From positions 1 to 64,000 of the forward strand of contig NIVC01000406.1 of the NCBI GenBank assembly GCA_002269645.1: a stretch of 64,000 nucleotides of DNA, given 5' to 3'. Under the pieces are notes generated by a model, which saw only the letters and a program-made list of their open reading frames with translations, had not been told where the DNA came from and ran no database searches. A program made the position numbers and the translations under genes. Shown here piece by piece: positions 1,320 through 7,300 of this stretch. Origin of the DNA: Macrostomum lignano (taxonomy: Eukaryota). Within the stretch, counting starts at the first letter, position 1; each line of letters starts with the position of its first letter.

Positions 1320-4300
1320 GAGGATTTGTTCACCCTTGAGGCCATCGGTTTGGGTGACCAAATCGAAAAAGTGCGCATCGGTCACGACGGCACAAACCGG
1401 GAGCCGGCTGGTACCTGGAAAAGTTGACAGTCTGGCGCGATGATCAACCCGATAAGAAGTTTGAATTCGTCTGCGACAGGTGAGACCGAGAGGATTAATT
1501 GCTGTTTCTCTCGTTTGCTTTTGAAACGGCGAAATCCTAGATATAGGGAATTGGCTTTTCTTTTCGTGGTTTGCTAAGATGAAGCTAGTTGAAGCTAGTA
1601 AAAGGCGCATGCATTCAAGGATCAGGAGCTCTCTATCTGTTGAACCTGCATCAGCTGGGTAATCTTGGCTATAGCAAATACAATAGGTACACACAGCCTT
1701 GGTAGATGTTGTTCCGCCTCTTCTCCGTTCTGGGCCATGCGAGTGTCTCCAATTTCTTGCGATGCCATTTCTATGGTTTACTGCTCCGATTTTACATTGT
1801 TAACTATAAGTGCATTCCCATTTAGGCTTCAAATTCAGTTACCAGTTATGATGAATTTAAACGGTTAGTAGCTGTATCTGGGAAGGGGTACTCTGACAGG
1901 GTCGAAATTTAACAACGTCGAAAAGCAAATGATTTCACAACGCCGAAAACTACTGCATGTTTTTTGTTACATTAAGTTTTCGACCCAGTGAAAGTGGCTG
2001 CTATTTGAATTTTCGACGTTGTGAAATTTTGAACTTGTGTGGAAAGCCTTGGGTGCACCCATAGTGCGTCTGTACTAACTTTATCTACAAATTCTACGCG
2101 ATATCATCATAATTTACTTTCATACCTTCTCCTTACCAGATGGTTGGACAAGAATGAAGACGACGGTCAAATCGAGAGAGATTTGACTCTCATCGGTCGA
2201 TGCTGACAGTGAGTTTTTACTGAGCTTTTTTCTGAGCTCACTCTGAGTTTTCTGCGGCAACGGCATCAATTTCTCCGAGGCTTTGAATTTCGAATTTGAG
2301 CCGATCCAATGGCATGTCGCGCCATTATGCATATTGATACGCGCTCGTACATGTCGCAACTTTCTTAGTCAATTCTCAGTTCATCCTCACTTAATTGTCT
2401 TTGTTAAACTAAACTAAACCACTCGCAAGAGGGGACACAGGGCCCAAAATGCGTAAATTTATATGGCATTTAATTAGGGGGGGGGGGTGAGTGTACATGT
2501 AGATAAGACAAGGAGGGGTGGAGTGCGTGACAAAAGAAAGAGGCCGAGCCAATCAAAAGGCAGCGAGGGAGAGAGAAAAAATAACAAGACTGAACCAAAC
2601 AGAGAGGGAGAGAAAACAGAGTAAACAGAGACAAGTACAGATGAACTAAAAAAGACTAAGAAAGTCGCGACAATACATATGATATATTTAAAGCCCCTGT
2701 AGCTTTGCTTTTATGCCTGCCCTGCCTGACGCAATGAGTTTTGGTTTGTGATGTACTTTGCTATTTTTGTACGCTTTGATCTTGTGCTCGTAGAAACGCG
2801 GTTGAAAAGAAAGATTTTGATGATGTTTATGCAATGCAAAATGAAGTTCATTATGCACCAAGCGATGTCAAGGAAATTCAACCTGAGAATTCCTTTTTTC
2901 CTACCGCAGAGATGTCCTACAACGTCTCAGTAAAGACTGGCGACGTGGCAGGCGCAGGCACCGACGCCAACGTATTCCTGACCATATTCGGCAAGAATGG
3001 CGAGACAGGCGAACGTCAGCTGCGGGCGTCGGACTCGGCGCTTAACAAATTCGAGAGGAACAGAATCGACATGTTCAAAATTGAGAGTCCCGACATAGGA
3101 GAGGTTTGCGCCATGAACTAGAGCTTGACAATACGAGCGTATCCCCATTTTGAAATCTATTTATAAACTAACTAGCAAGGTAAATATCTAAGGAAGCTTA
3201 GATGCTCTGGCAACAGAAACAGAGTTAATATTGAACCGAGAGCATTATGGTATAGAAAATTGTCTACTAAGTTTATCTTTCAGTGTCACTGCCAAGCTTA
3301 CCGCTAGCTATTGCTGGCCAACACGACTTAGGTGAGTCGTGCAATTGACAGTTCAACCTTGTTCCCGCCCCATTTCGCTAACCCCTGGCGACCACGGGCA
3401 GCTGTGCCGGTACTCGGTGAAGACTGAGTACCAGTGATGCCGGTATCCGCAGCGCGGTCCCCCTCCGGAGAGTCCAGGAGGTGATGATCGCTCGTCCGTA
3501 GCCTTTAGGTAGCGGACGAGCTGGTAGAGATTCTCGGGCCTGAAAACATCCTGAGTAAAGACAGGGAATTCACAGATGAATTTCTCCGCATTCTCGACAC
3601 CGGAGAGGCAAAAAGGGCAGCGCACTACCTCACTACGGATTTTTCCCTGTAGGTGACGATGCTTGGCAAAACAGCTATGATCCGAGAGGGCCATGGTCAC
3701 CGCCCTGATGTCCCTGCGGCTGAGTCCAAGCAGGGCCCTGCGGAGGGCGGAGGAAGGACAGGGGACTGCCGCGCGGATTGCCGGCAGTCGGGAGCGTTAG
3801 CCCACCTCTCTCTGTGCTTTGAAGCCACCCACTGGTTGATCCGAGTGGTGTCGCGCCTAACTCACTAACCTAGCTCGTAAAACAATAATTTTCTTGCAAT
3901 CAAATCGGGACTAAAATTTTACATCTAAGTATTGTGCTCTAGAACATTAGAAGAGAAAAAGTTAAAGTGTAAAGATCTGTTGTGATTTTCTGATGCCGCC
4001 TCTCGCCGCAATTTCGGCTTTATCGGTTGATTTATTTGAGAAATTAATTTTCAGCTGTTAAAATTGTTGTTTTGGGGGTTGTTTAGCGTTCAAACAAGCT
4101 GACAAGCTGGTAAAAGCGTGAATAGGTTTTGATGGTCAAGACATTTCTTAGCGGTGCAGGCTTATTACAGAAACAAAAATGTTTTATTTTGCTGTCCAGA
4201 GCGCGGCGTTTTCGATTTTCTTGAGCCTGACTGAGTGTTATTCTTTAGTTCGACTCCTCAAAGTTATTCTCGTCATCGTAGAAGTCGTACAGACTGTTGT

Positions 4301-7300
4301 CTTGATCGTGCATCAGTCCAGCACGCTTCTTGCCGAAGTGCAGCAGTCCAGCACGCTTCTTGCCGAAGTGCAGCAGTCCAGCACGCTTCTTGCCGAAGTG
4401 CAGCAGTCCAGCACGCTTCTTGCCGAAGTGCAGCAGTCCAGCACGCTTCTTGCCGAAGTGCAGCAGTCCAGCACGCTTCTTGCCGAAGTGCAGCAGTCCT
4501 GCACGCTTCTTTCCAAAGTGCAGCAGTCCAGCACGCTTCTTTCCAAAGTGCAGCAGTCCAGCACGCTTCTTGCCGAAGTGCAGCAGTCCAGCACGCTTCT
4601 TGCCGAAGTGCAGCAGTCCAGCACGCTTCTTTCCAAAGTGCAGCAGTCCAGCACGCTTCTTTCCAAAGTGCAGCAGTCCAGCACGCTTCTTTCCAAAGTG
4701 CAGCAGTCCAGCACGCTTCTTTCCAAAGTGCAGCAGTCCAGCACGTTTACCGAAGTGCAGAAGTCCAGCACGCTTCTTGCCGAAGTGCAGAAGTCCAGCG
4801 CGCTTCTTGCCGAAGTGCAGCAGTCCTGCACGCTTCTCGAAGTCGTCGCTGTCCTCATTATCGTCATCCACAACAACGTCGGTTGCTTCCTCGCTAACTG
4901 GAATGGTCGCATCCGCCAGTCCATCAGCGAACCAGGCTCCGTCTAGGTCGGCGTCATTCAGCGCCACCTGGCTCTCGGCCAAGCTGCAGGCGCAGACCAA
5001 AGCAAGAAACGATGCAATAGCGATTCGCCACATTGTCTACGTTGTGCCCTGAAAGTGGATTTTTGATTTTAAAACCATGAAGCTTAAGGAGCGCATAAAT
5101 TCCTGCTGCATAACGGTATCACCAAAGCAATCTATGCTCATACCTTTTACGCCTCAGCTGCGCTGTAGCTAGTCAGTTAGAGGAAAGTATTTCAAAAATA
5201 AAAGAGAAACTCCAACTAAAACCAGGCTTGGGTTCCTCGGAAAGTGAAAGAAAAATTTATCTGTCGACGTGTGTAACGTGTTTTATATGCTGCTGCCGTT
5301 CTGCTTTTAGGGAGAGAGAGAAAGAAAATCATCCGAAATGAAGGAAGATGGCTTAGAGAAGAAAAGAATGCAGAGCTCGAGATGCGGCAGACTGTTCTGG
5401 GATCTCTGATTGGCTAACGCAAATGACCAGTTTCTTGCGCTAAAAATAGTGCCTTTCTATTGGTTGGCAGGAATCAGGGGTTAAATCTATACGCTTGGTA
5501 GTTACGACAGGGCTGCAAACAGAATTGTCCGATCCACTAGTCCACTAGCTAGTTATCGGGTAAAAAATGCAAGAAATGCAAGGGAACTTTTGGGAATTAT
5601 GTTTTTAGGACAGGTTATTTAAAACATGAGAGTACCTATTATTTCGAAGATGATGCTTTTCTGTAAGAAATTTAAGTTTCCCTTCGACCGACTTGAAGTA
5701 TTCATCAACTTTGATCCACTCCACAGCTGGAGCGCATCAGGATTCGCCACGATGGCAGCCTGCCAAATTCAGGCTGGTTTCTCGACTGGGTTCGCATCGC
5801 CGTGCCCTCCCGCGGTAAGCAGTACCTGTTCGCCGCGCACCGCTGGCTGGACACTAACGAGGCCGATCGGAAACTGGAAATCGATATCGACTGCAGCGAA
5901 GTTACGGATATCGAACGAAGTAAGAAACTATTTCACTGATCATGGGATTCAAGTGGCCCAGACGGACGTAGGCCCCCTGTCCCCACCTCTATATATTTGA
6001 CTACCTTATAGCTAATGTTGTACCATATTTTCAAGTTCATTGTTAAAAATTTGTTTTGCACCCCGCCTCACCAATTCCCTAATTCAAGCCATTCCGTACG
6101 AGATAATCGTGCAAACCGGCGACTGCAAGGGCGCCGGCACAGACGCGGCCGTTTTCGTGCAAATCTACGGCGAAGATGGGCTCAAGACTGACCAGACGCT
6201 GCTTCGATCCCGCTCCGACAACTTCGAGAAGGGCAAAGAGGATCGCTTCAAGCTGGATCTTATCGACGTCGGACCAATTCAGAAGATTCGCATTGGACAC
6301 GACGGTACAGGTTTCGGCGACGGATGGTTCCTTGAGCACGTGCTCATCAGGCGTCACGCGCTGCGCGGATCGCGTCGACTAAAACTTAATCGGAAATCGA
6401 GCTCTCAGGCTCGCAACCGCTCCTTGTCGCTGGCACAATCACAGCAGCTCAACCGAAGAAAGTCATTTGCTGCCGCTGCGGAGCCCTACAAAAAAGACTA
6501 CTACGACGATGAAGACGACGAAGACGAGGACGGAGTGGTTGACCTAGACGAAGATGACATCAGCAGCAGAAAAAAAACCGGGGCCCGGCGGCCGTCTGTC
6601 CGACCGGCGTCGGCTAAGAAACGTCGAGATTCATCGCCTGCGGGCAACACTAGGTCTCGCTCTCGATCGCCTTACGATGAGGATAACGATCTGCGTCTTT
6701 CAATTGGCGATGACGACGATGACAAAGACAGCAGACGAGACAGTAGATTGCGGCGTCGGTCATCCGCGGTGCAGAGTTCAAAAAGTCATGGACGAGGACG
6801 GCGACCCAGTCCTTTTGATGACGAAGAGGACGACTCGGACATAGACGGTGAAGATGAGGCTGGAGATCGAGCCTCTTCTCGAAGGGGTACTTTACGCCGT
6901 CCATCGTCTTCTGTTGGTGACCGCCGACGCTCATCTGTGAAGCAAGCCCCGTTAAGAAGTGCCGATAATCGCAAGAACTTTAACGACGACGATAACTTTG
7001 ACGATAGTGATGATGATTTGCCATCTTCGTCTAGGGGCAAAAAGCCTCCATCGTCGTCGCCCAGTGGACGGCGCTATTCAACTCGACCATCACGCGCTGC
7101 TCTTACGGACAGCCTTGAGGATGGCGATGGGCGAGCGAGTCGTCGGTCGTCGGTCCGGCCTGGCAGCGACGCCCTCAGACGACGGGCTAACTCCATGATT
7201 CCACTAAGAGGTCAGCAGCGAAGTCTCTGGCGCGTCGATGAGGAATCAGAGGGCGGCTTCTCAATTGACGACGCCGAAATGGATCAGGACGATCTGGACA

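Follow-up and report, generated by a model that had tools for sequence, protein, structure and literature searches.

The question raised by this locus is whether a tandem repeat that Macrostomum lignano, a free-living flatworm, carries within an intron of a LOXHD1-like gene encodes a neuropeptide precursor or is one more minisatellite in a stretch of DNA that is rich in them. The repeat is located in the first 64 kb of contig NIVC01000406.1 (assembly GCA_002269645.1), an accession identified as belonging to the Mlig_3_7 assembly of M. lignano (Wudarski et al. 2017, PMC5730564); this whole 64-kb stretch is referred to here as the window. From its sequence, the locus is very probably a functional gene for the multi-copy precursor of an amidated neuropeptide (or peptide hormone), AGLLHFamide.

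A precursor with 17 AGLLHFG units

The precursor open reading frame (ORF; Table 1) has exactly the organisation that an initial annotation of this DNA had described, i.e. a signal-like N terminus, 17 AGLLHFG units separated by KKR or KR, and a degenerate further unit, AGLMH. The N terminus contains a basic n-region (R3) and a hydrophobic core with 11-residue Kyte-Doolittle means of up to 2.8, and the S-L-A at the predicted cleavage site agrees with the -3/-1 rule; the signal peptide was thus assessed heuristically, by Kyte-Doolittle hydrophobicity and the -3/-1 rule. The AGLLHFG units are identical in 17/17 cases, and the residues that follow are KKR in 16 of them and KR in the remaining one. 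Accordingly, every unit ends in F-G-K(K)R with a Gly, the amide donor, in front of a basic site, and the convertase sites that bound the units are EKR, KKR or KR. Tandem Repeats Finder (TRF) reported the array at 4308-4837 with a period of 30 nt, 17.8 copies and 95% matches, and a degenerate pattern of the unit gave 17 matches where 0.01 were expected by chance. We favour a neuropeptide precursor because its anatomy is complete, from the signal-like N terminus through the acidic spacer and the 17 copies of AGLLHFG at KR/KKR sites to the acidic tail.

A full HMMER (phmmer) search of 1.84 billion representative proteins with the precursor returned 505 matches at E<=1e-3, of which the best 150 were inspected. 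The genuine proteins among these 150 are neuropeptide precursors, with repeats of the myomodulin type (PMSMLRL-G-KR), of the FMRFamide type (GSLFRF-G-KR) and of the PGVLRFamide type (PGVLRF-G-KR), which align to the precursor via the common periodicity of a hydrophobic residue followed by G-K-R; the others are spurious repeat ORFs. Because the real matches are multi-copy neuropeptide precursors, the architecture of the precursor is canonical. AGLLHF itself was present in none of the best 150 of the 505 matches, and none of them matched the non-repeat N terminus.

A tandem repeat by itself is ordinary in this window, in which TRF reported 47 rows, other period-30 arrays included, with periods that range from 13 to 45 nt and copy numbers that reach 116. 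The array could, therefore, be a non-coding intronic minisatellite with a chance open frame, in which case the coding sequence in the public record would be an artefact that TransDecoder produced from host pre-mRNA or antisense noise. Consistent with this possibility, the window holds more than 20 arrays, several of which repeat every 15-45 nt and carry long ORFs in several frames, and four ORFs of more than 200 aa besides the precursor ORF cross the AGLLHFG array. Because the repeat opens these four other frames, the length of the ORF was discarded as evidence.

By contrast, the pattern of differences among the units is specific to one frame. The 17 units differ by seven distinct substitutions, all in third positions, and 7/7 are synonymous in the AGLLHFG frame, while the numbers in the remaining five frames are 0, 0, 0, 5 and 0 of 7. 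As 24 of the 90 possible substitutions in the consensus are synonymous, 7/7 has P~1e-4. Moreover, the sole indel among the units is the loss of one whole AAG codon and is, therefore, in frame. These results agree with the statement of the initial annotation that all differences between units are synonymous except for one lost Lys, and add that this holds for no other frame. As a control, 12 other minisatellites of the window whose period is a multiple of 3 were considered; their substitutions affect all three phases, and about 20-40% of them count as "synonymous" whatever the frame. It is this coding signature that is unusual, and the other arrays lack it. We conclude that purifying selection acts on the AGLLHFG frame. 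In addition, the ORF continues for 68 codons upstream of the array, through the acidic spacer and into the Met-initiated signal peptide, an extension that would not be expected of random repeats; every unit carries Gly and basic residues; and TATA and AATAAA motifs flank the ORF in the correct orientation. Altogether, these observations make a non-coding minisatellite with a chance frame extremely improbable.

The public record on NIVC01000406.1 already holds a gene with exactly the 262-aa precursor as its product. The Mlig_3_7 annotation was made from genome-guided RNA-seq assemblies; these were split at trans-splice and poly(A) sites that had been determined by experiment, and TransDecoder called the ORFs. 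Because the coding sequence is recorded in this RNA-seq-based annotation, a transcript of the peptide gene is implied, and the public annotation thus provides indirect evidence for its transcription.

Table 1. Features of the peptide gene and of the host exons that flank it (positions in the window; CDS, coding sequence)
Feature	Position	Strand	Remarks
Host exon, first half of a PLAT domain, ends at a codon boundary	2910..3103	+	AG/GT borders
Host intron, 2623 nt, phase 0, GT...AG, encloses the whole peptide gene on the opposite strand	3104..5726	+	
AATAAA polyadenylation motif	4183..4188	-	57 nt past the stop codon
Prepropeptide CDS, single exon	4245..5033	-	789-nt ORF, 262 aa; stop codon 4245-4247
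Acidic C-terminal tail, 25 residues, starts with degenerate 18th unit AGLMH	4248..4322	-	without Gly or basic site
17 tandem AGLLHFG units, each with KKR (unit 3: KR)	4323..4829	-	predicted product 17 x AGLLHF-NH2
Acidic spacer, residues 21-68, ends EKR	4830..4973	-	16 D+E vs 2 K+R in 48 residues
Signal-peptide-like N terminus, ~residues 1-20, predicted cut before E	4974..5033	-	hydrophobicity and -3/-1 rule
Putative leader intron, 95 nt, AAG/GTATGA ... CCACTTTCAG/G	5049..5143	-	GT...AG motif
TATAAAA, putative core promoter	5281..5287	-	motif 248 nt upstream of ATG
Host exon, second half of the PLAT domain begun in 2910-3103	5727..5919	+	AG/GT borders

The initial annotation had also provided the gene with a TATA-driven start, an intron in the 5' untranslated region and a poly(A) signal. 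The TATAAAA, GT...AG and AATAAA sequences are all present as described, but the leader intron and the TATA-driven start are motifs only and are listed here as putative. The ATG of the precursor, at 5033, lies in the context GACAATGT. In the window, TATAAAA occurs 0.13 times and AATAAA 0.56 times per kb per strand; because of such background frequencies, the TATA, CCAAT and AATAAA motifs lend weak to modest support to the gene. The GT...AG interval contains four ATGs, compared with none in the 137 nt that separate the donor from TATA, which is consistent with removal of the interval. As trans-splicing adds a spliced leader to 38.8% of the genes of M. lignano, the AG at 5050-5049 may alternatively be a spliced-leader trans-splice acceptor and not the end of a cis-intron.

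Two CCAAT motifs on the minus strand, at 5409-5413 (GCCAATCAG) and 5459-5463 (ACCAATAG), are located ~125 and ~175 nt upstream of TATA. With CCAAT occurring 1.4 times per kb per strand in the window, the two are weak evidence.

The host gene and the nesting

When the host exons at 2910-3103 and 5727-5919 are joined, they encode a single PLAT/LH2 domain (Pfam PF01477, E=2.8e-22, residues 3-110 of 128). Because the phase-0 junction of the flanking exons yields one PLAT domain, the antisense nesting of the peptide gene is real in the assembly. The nesting and the phase-0 join had both been proposed in the initial annotation, and both stand, with canonical exon borders and a domain match that runs across the junction. 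PLAT-coding exons on the plus strand span 2912 to ~23120, and Pfam recognises PLAT in the joined exons as well as in two larger ORFs. Moreover, the public record holds a multi-PLAT host gene model of 1980 aa, and one relative bears the name LOXHD1 from JGI (P0171). By these predicted domains, the host is a multi-PLAT, LOXHD1-like gene. The mean intron length in M. lignano is 1.1-1.4 kb, and a host intron of 2623 nt is unremarkable in size for this species.

The nesting could be a misassembly in which the peptide gene was wrongly joined into the LOXHD1-like intron. The genome of M. lignano has many repeats and is neopolyploid, and assembling it is an acknowledged difficulty; in addition, a probable 1-nt frameshift in the PLAT exon upstream of the host model (see below) points to local sequence errors. 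However, the window contains zero Ns, the flanking exons have canonical splice sites and rebuild one PLAT domain across 2623 nt, a single public gene model spans the interval, and a chimeric join would need two breakpoints in one intron. We therefore regard a misassembly as highly improbable. A search with the host PLAT sequence for homeologous or orthologous loci was uninformative, as its best matches were metagenomic fragments of only 59% identity, on contigs (L002-L005) that lack a nested peptide array.

The layout of the locus, with a complete gene that has its own signals inside an intron of a larger gene, is that of nested antisense intronic genes of metazoans in general, from which the M. 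lignano case is not distinguished in any feature. We take the nesting to be an ordinary intronic antisense arrangement. The co-regulation or mutual exclusion of host and peptide gene in sensory neurons that had been proposed for this locus is pure speculation.

Several other observations concern the host gene and its surroundings. Upstream of the annotated host start, the plus-strand segments 1317-1480 and 2141-2194 encode the C-terminal two-thirds of a further PLAT domain, with a 1-nt frame shift at ~1395-1400 and an in-frame stop after 2194. This partial domain is either the result of an assembly indel or a decayed exon, and the host gene probably starts further 5' than its model does, perhaps beyond the end of the contig. 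Within the host intron and downstream of the peptide gene, there is an open stretch at 3400-3720 on the minus strand; it resembles the Cys-rich C-terminal region of a non-LTR retrotransposon ORF2, and we take it to be probably a transposon fragment.

Introns of the PLAT gene harbour many of the minisatellites of the window, and several of the arrays give rise to long spurious ORFs on either strand. Arrays are present at 11172-12328, 13026-14817, 17101-19502, 25565-26038, 28961-30011, 40445-41309, 42479-43290, 44386-46286, 48475-49569, 53348-54585, 56733-57693 and elsewhere. Two near-perfect 15-nt arrays, at 21250-21475 (+) and 25565-26038 (+), have the consensus units GTGCTGGCGCCTCTG and GCCAGCACCAGAGGC; these are reverse-complementary to each other, and the two arrays, 4 kb apart, form an inverted pair of one satellite. 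Further downstream, a 229-aa ORF on the minus strand at 59350-60039 contains leucine-rich repeats (LRR_8, E=1e-18); it belongs, as an exon, to another minus-strand gene, which lies downstream of the PLAT gene. A 353-aa ORF at 62690-63751 (-) that encodes an RNase H domain (PF00075, E=1e-13) and also matches RVT_3 weakly is probably a retrotransposon remnant. Rfam detected an RNA family nowhere in the window.

Relation to described peptides

The closest described peptide to AGLLHFamide is ASALHFamide of the acoel Diopisthoporus gymnopharyngeus (Thiel et al. 2018, PMC6188537, supplementary file 4), an amidated hexapeptide that also ends in LHF-NH2 and is identical to AGLLHFamide in 4/6 residues (A--LHF). 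Its precursor, ...DDKR-ASALHFGRK x5, resembles the AGLLHF precursor in having a signal peptide, an acidic spacer that ends in KR, and identical copies arranged head to tail with only basic residues between them. The two differ in copy number (five for ASALHFamide and 17 for AGLLHF) and in their spacers (RK and KKR, respectively), and the animals that bear them belong to separate phyla, an acoel in the one case and a rhabditophoran-sister flatworm in the other. In a BLASTP comparison of the two precursors, the repeat blocks are 62% identical, and nothing outside the repeats aligns. With four matching residues and the same tandem architecture, the LxFamide resemblance that the initial annotation had noticed gains a concrete counterpart; the likeness may be the result of convergence.

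AGLLHFamide has the C-terminal Leu-x-Phe-NH2 of the LxFamides (L-H-F-G-KKR), and by this predicted C terminus it is, descriptively, a peptide of the LxFamide or LHFamide type. Homology to an LxFamide precursor beyond the short motif was not found, as the BLASTP alignment with the ASALHFamide precursor covers repeat units only. Thiel et al. (2018, PMC6188537) grouped the acoel peptides with the LxFamides and noted their likeness to the L-type SALMFamides of echinoderms, leaving open whether it reflects homology or convergence. The L-type SALMFamides, which are muscle relaxants, share with AGLLHFamide the C-terminal Leu-x-Phe-NH2 and the multi-copy precursor (PMC3594158). Unlike AGLLHFamide, they are longer, have heterogeneous copies and typically an S-x-L-x-F core, and their precursors have no similarity to the AGLLHF precursor. 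Because similarity is confined to the repeats, orthology of AGLLHF with the LxFamides is unproven, and it is unlikely that true orthology links AGLLHFamide to the LxFamides of xenacoelomorphs, ASALHFamide among them, and to the echinoderm L-type SALMFamides.

Other peptides that end in HFamide are known. In the platyhelminths, an "XHFamide" proneuropeptide of the polyclad Prostheceraeus crozieri is present in larval apical neurons (Piovani et al. 2023, PMC10396302); it is named for its xHF-amide end and may or may not belong to the same family as AGLLHFamide. Chelicerates have x[M/L]HFamide precursors (Stegodyphus KFM65086.1, which is annotated "FMRF-amide neuropeptide", Ornithodoros XP_064487939.1 and Trichonephila GFV34043.1) with many copies that end in [M/L]-H-F-G-K-[K/R], as in AGLLHF, but their peptides are longer (e.g. 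PWENHNTMHF and NRIMHF), their spacers are variable and the precursors are very long, so that only the HFG-basic end is common to both.

As an observation in its own right, these spider and tick precursors (P0006, P0040 and P0121 for Stegodyphus, Ornithodoros and Trichonephila) contain 15-41 copies of x[M/L]HF-G-K[K/R] and are annotated just as "FMRF-amide neuropeptide" or as uncharacterised; they may represent a chelicerate HFamide family.

The FMRFamide-like peptides (FLPs) and myomodulins of lophotrochozoans follow the same precursor logic, with a signal peptide, an acidic spacer and tandem short amidated peptides. AGLLHF, however, ends in HFamide in contrast to their RFamide and RLamide, and a change from R to H was seen here only in rare variant copies within FMRFamide precursors. 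With His-Phe-NH2 in place of Arg-Phe-NH2 in 17/17 copies, an identity as an FLP was rejected. The Orexin/hypocretin family (Pfam PF02072), the sole Pfam match of the precursor, was likewise rejected, because the precursor scored 16.5 bits against a gathering cut-off of 22.6 and no stretch passes alone; the resemblance to orexin is limited to AG[IL]L..G-basic (P0099).

Further searches for relatives gave the following results. A word-indexed homology search with the full precursor gave no match at E<=0.01, in a collection that apparently lacks (or masks) M. lignano proteins, and an exact look-up likewise did not find the precursor among these proteins. An HFG-basic motif was not found in the Schmidtea prohormone supplements, and in the nemertean, brachiopod and phoronid sets no related LHFamide precursor was found, only rare YMHF and YLHF variants inside FMRFamide precursors. 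Finally, the string "GLLHF" occurs in no neuropeptide paper among 8.3 million searchable full texts, a set that does not include the surveys of McVeigh 2009 and Koziol 2016. The earlier remark that AGLLHFamide is not a named peptide is thus consistent with the searchable literature, and we call it undescribed only provisionally.

Processing, cell type and meaning

In the mechanism that we propose, the peptide gene would be transcribed from its own putative promoter region and end at its own poly(A) signal, and the 262-aa prepropeptide would enter the secretory pathway by means of its N-terminal signal peptide. A PC2-type prohormone convertase would then cleave after the KR and KKR sites, a carboxypeptidase would remove the basic residues, and peptidylglycine alpha-amidating monooxygenase would convert each C-terminal Gly to an amide. 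Each precursor would, in this way, yield 17 copies of AGLLHF-NH2 ([M+H]+ 656.388) together with acidic spacer peptides. Dense-core vesicles of peptidergic cells would release AGLLHF-NH2, which would act on a receptor, most likely a G protein-coupled receptor. A PC2 homologue of M. lignano is expressed in the nervous system and is essential.

A real secreted multi-copy precursor could also be non-neuronal and give rise to an exocrine or glandular product, for example a pheromone, a reproductive secretion or one from the adhesive glands. The sequence features indicate just a processed, amidated and secreted peptide and do not specify a cell type, and M. lignano has many gland-specific secreted products. 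On the other hand, many identical short amidated peptides between dibasic sites are characteristic of neuropeptide precursors, which also account for all of the best-scoring real proteins in the best 150 of the 505 phmmer matches, and the closest described peptide, ASALHFamide, is catalogued as a neuropeptide. A gland product is, therefore, quite unlikely.

Five points weigh against a neuropeptide gene. Minisatellites with open frames abound in the window, so that ORF length alone is worthless. The predicted signal peptide is a call from hydrophobicity and the -3/-1 rule. No orthologue or paralogue of the precursor was retrieved by the word-indexed search or among the best 150 of the 505 phmmer matches. 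Expression, splicing, the mature peptide and its localisation are judged here from sequence and public annotation, and the cells that produce AGLLHF could be non-neuronal. With these points taken into account, a functional neuropeptide precursor gene is still the reading that we hold to be very probable.

What was already known is the coding sequence, which is in the public annotation, and both the kind of gene and its nesting are ordinary; it may be new to recognise in AGLLHFamide a flatworm neuropeptide, and one that closely resembles an acoel peptide. The nesting offers at most a handy example in which to study whether a gene that lies antisense in an intron interferes with the gene around it. 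Provided that the peptide is made, M. lignano would gain a well-defined and highly amplified neuropeptide that is tractable by transgenesis, RNAi and live imaging, and the 17 copies per transcript suggest that the peptide would be heavily used. Moreover, the likeness between AGLLHFamide and the acoel peptide bears on the question of whether LxFamide- and SALMFamide-like peptides are ancient bilaterian signals or the outcome of repeated convergence on a short motif. If orthology were true, the "clade-restricted" LxFamide family would have a protostome member, and LxFamide signalling would be ancestral to Bilateria.

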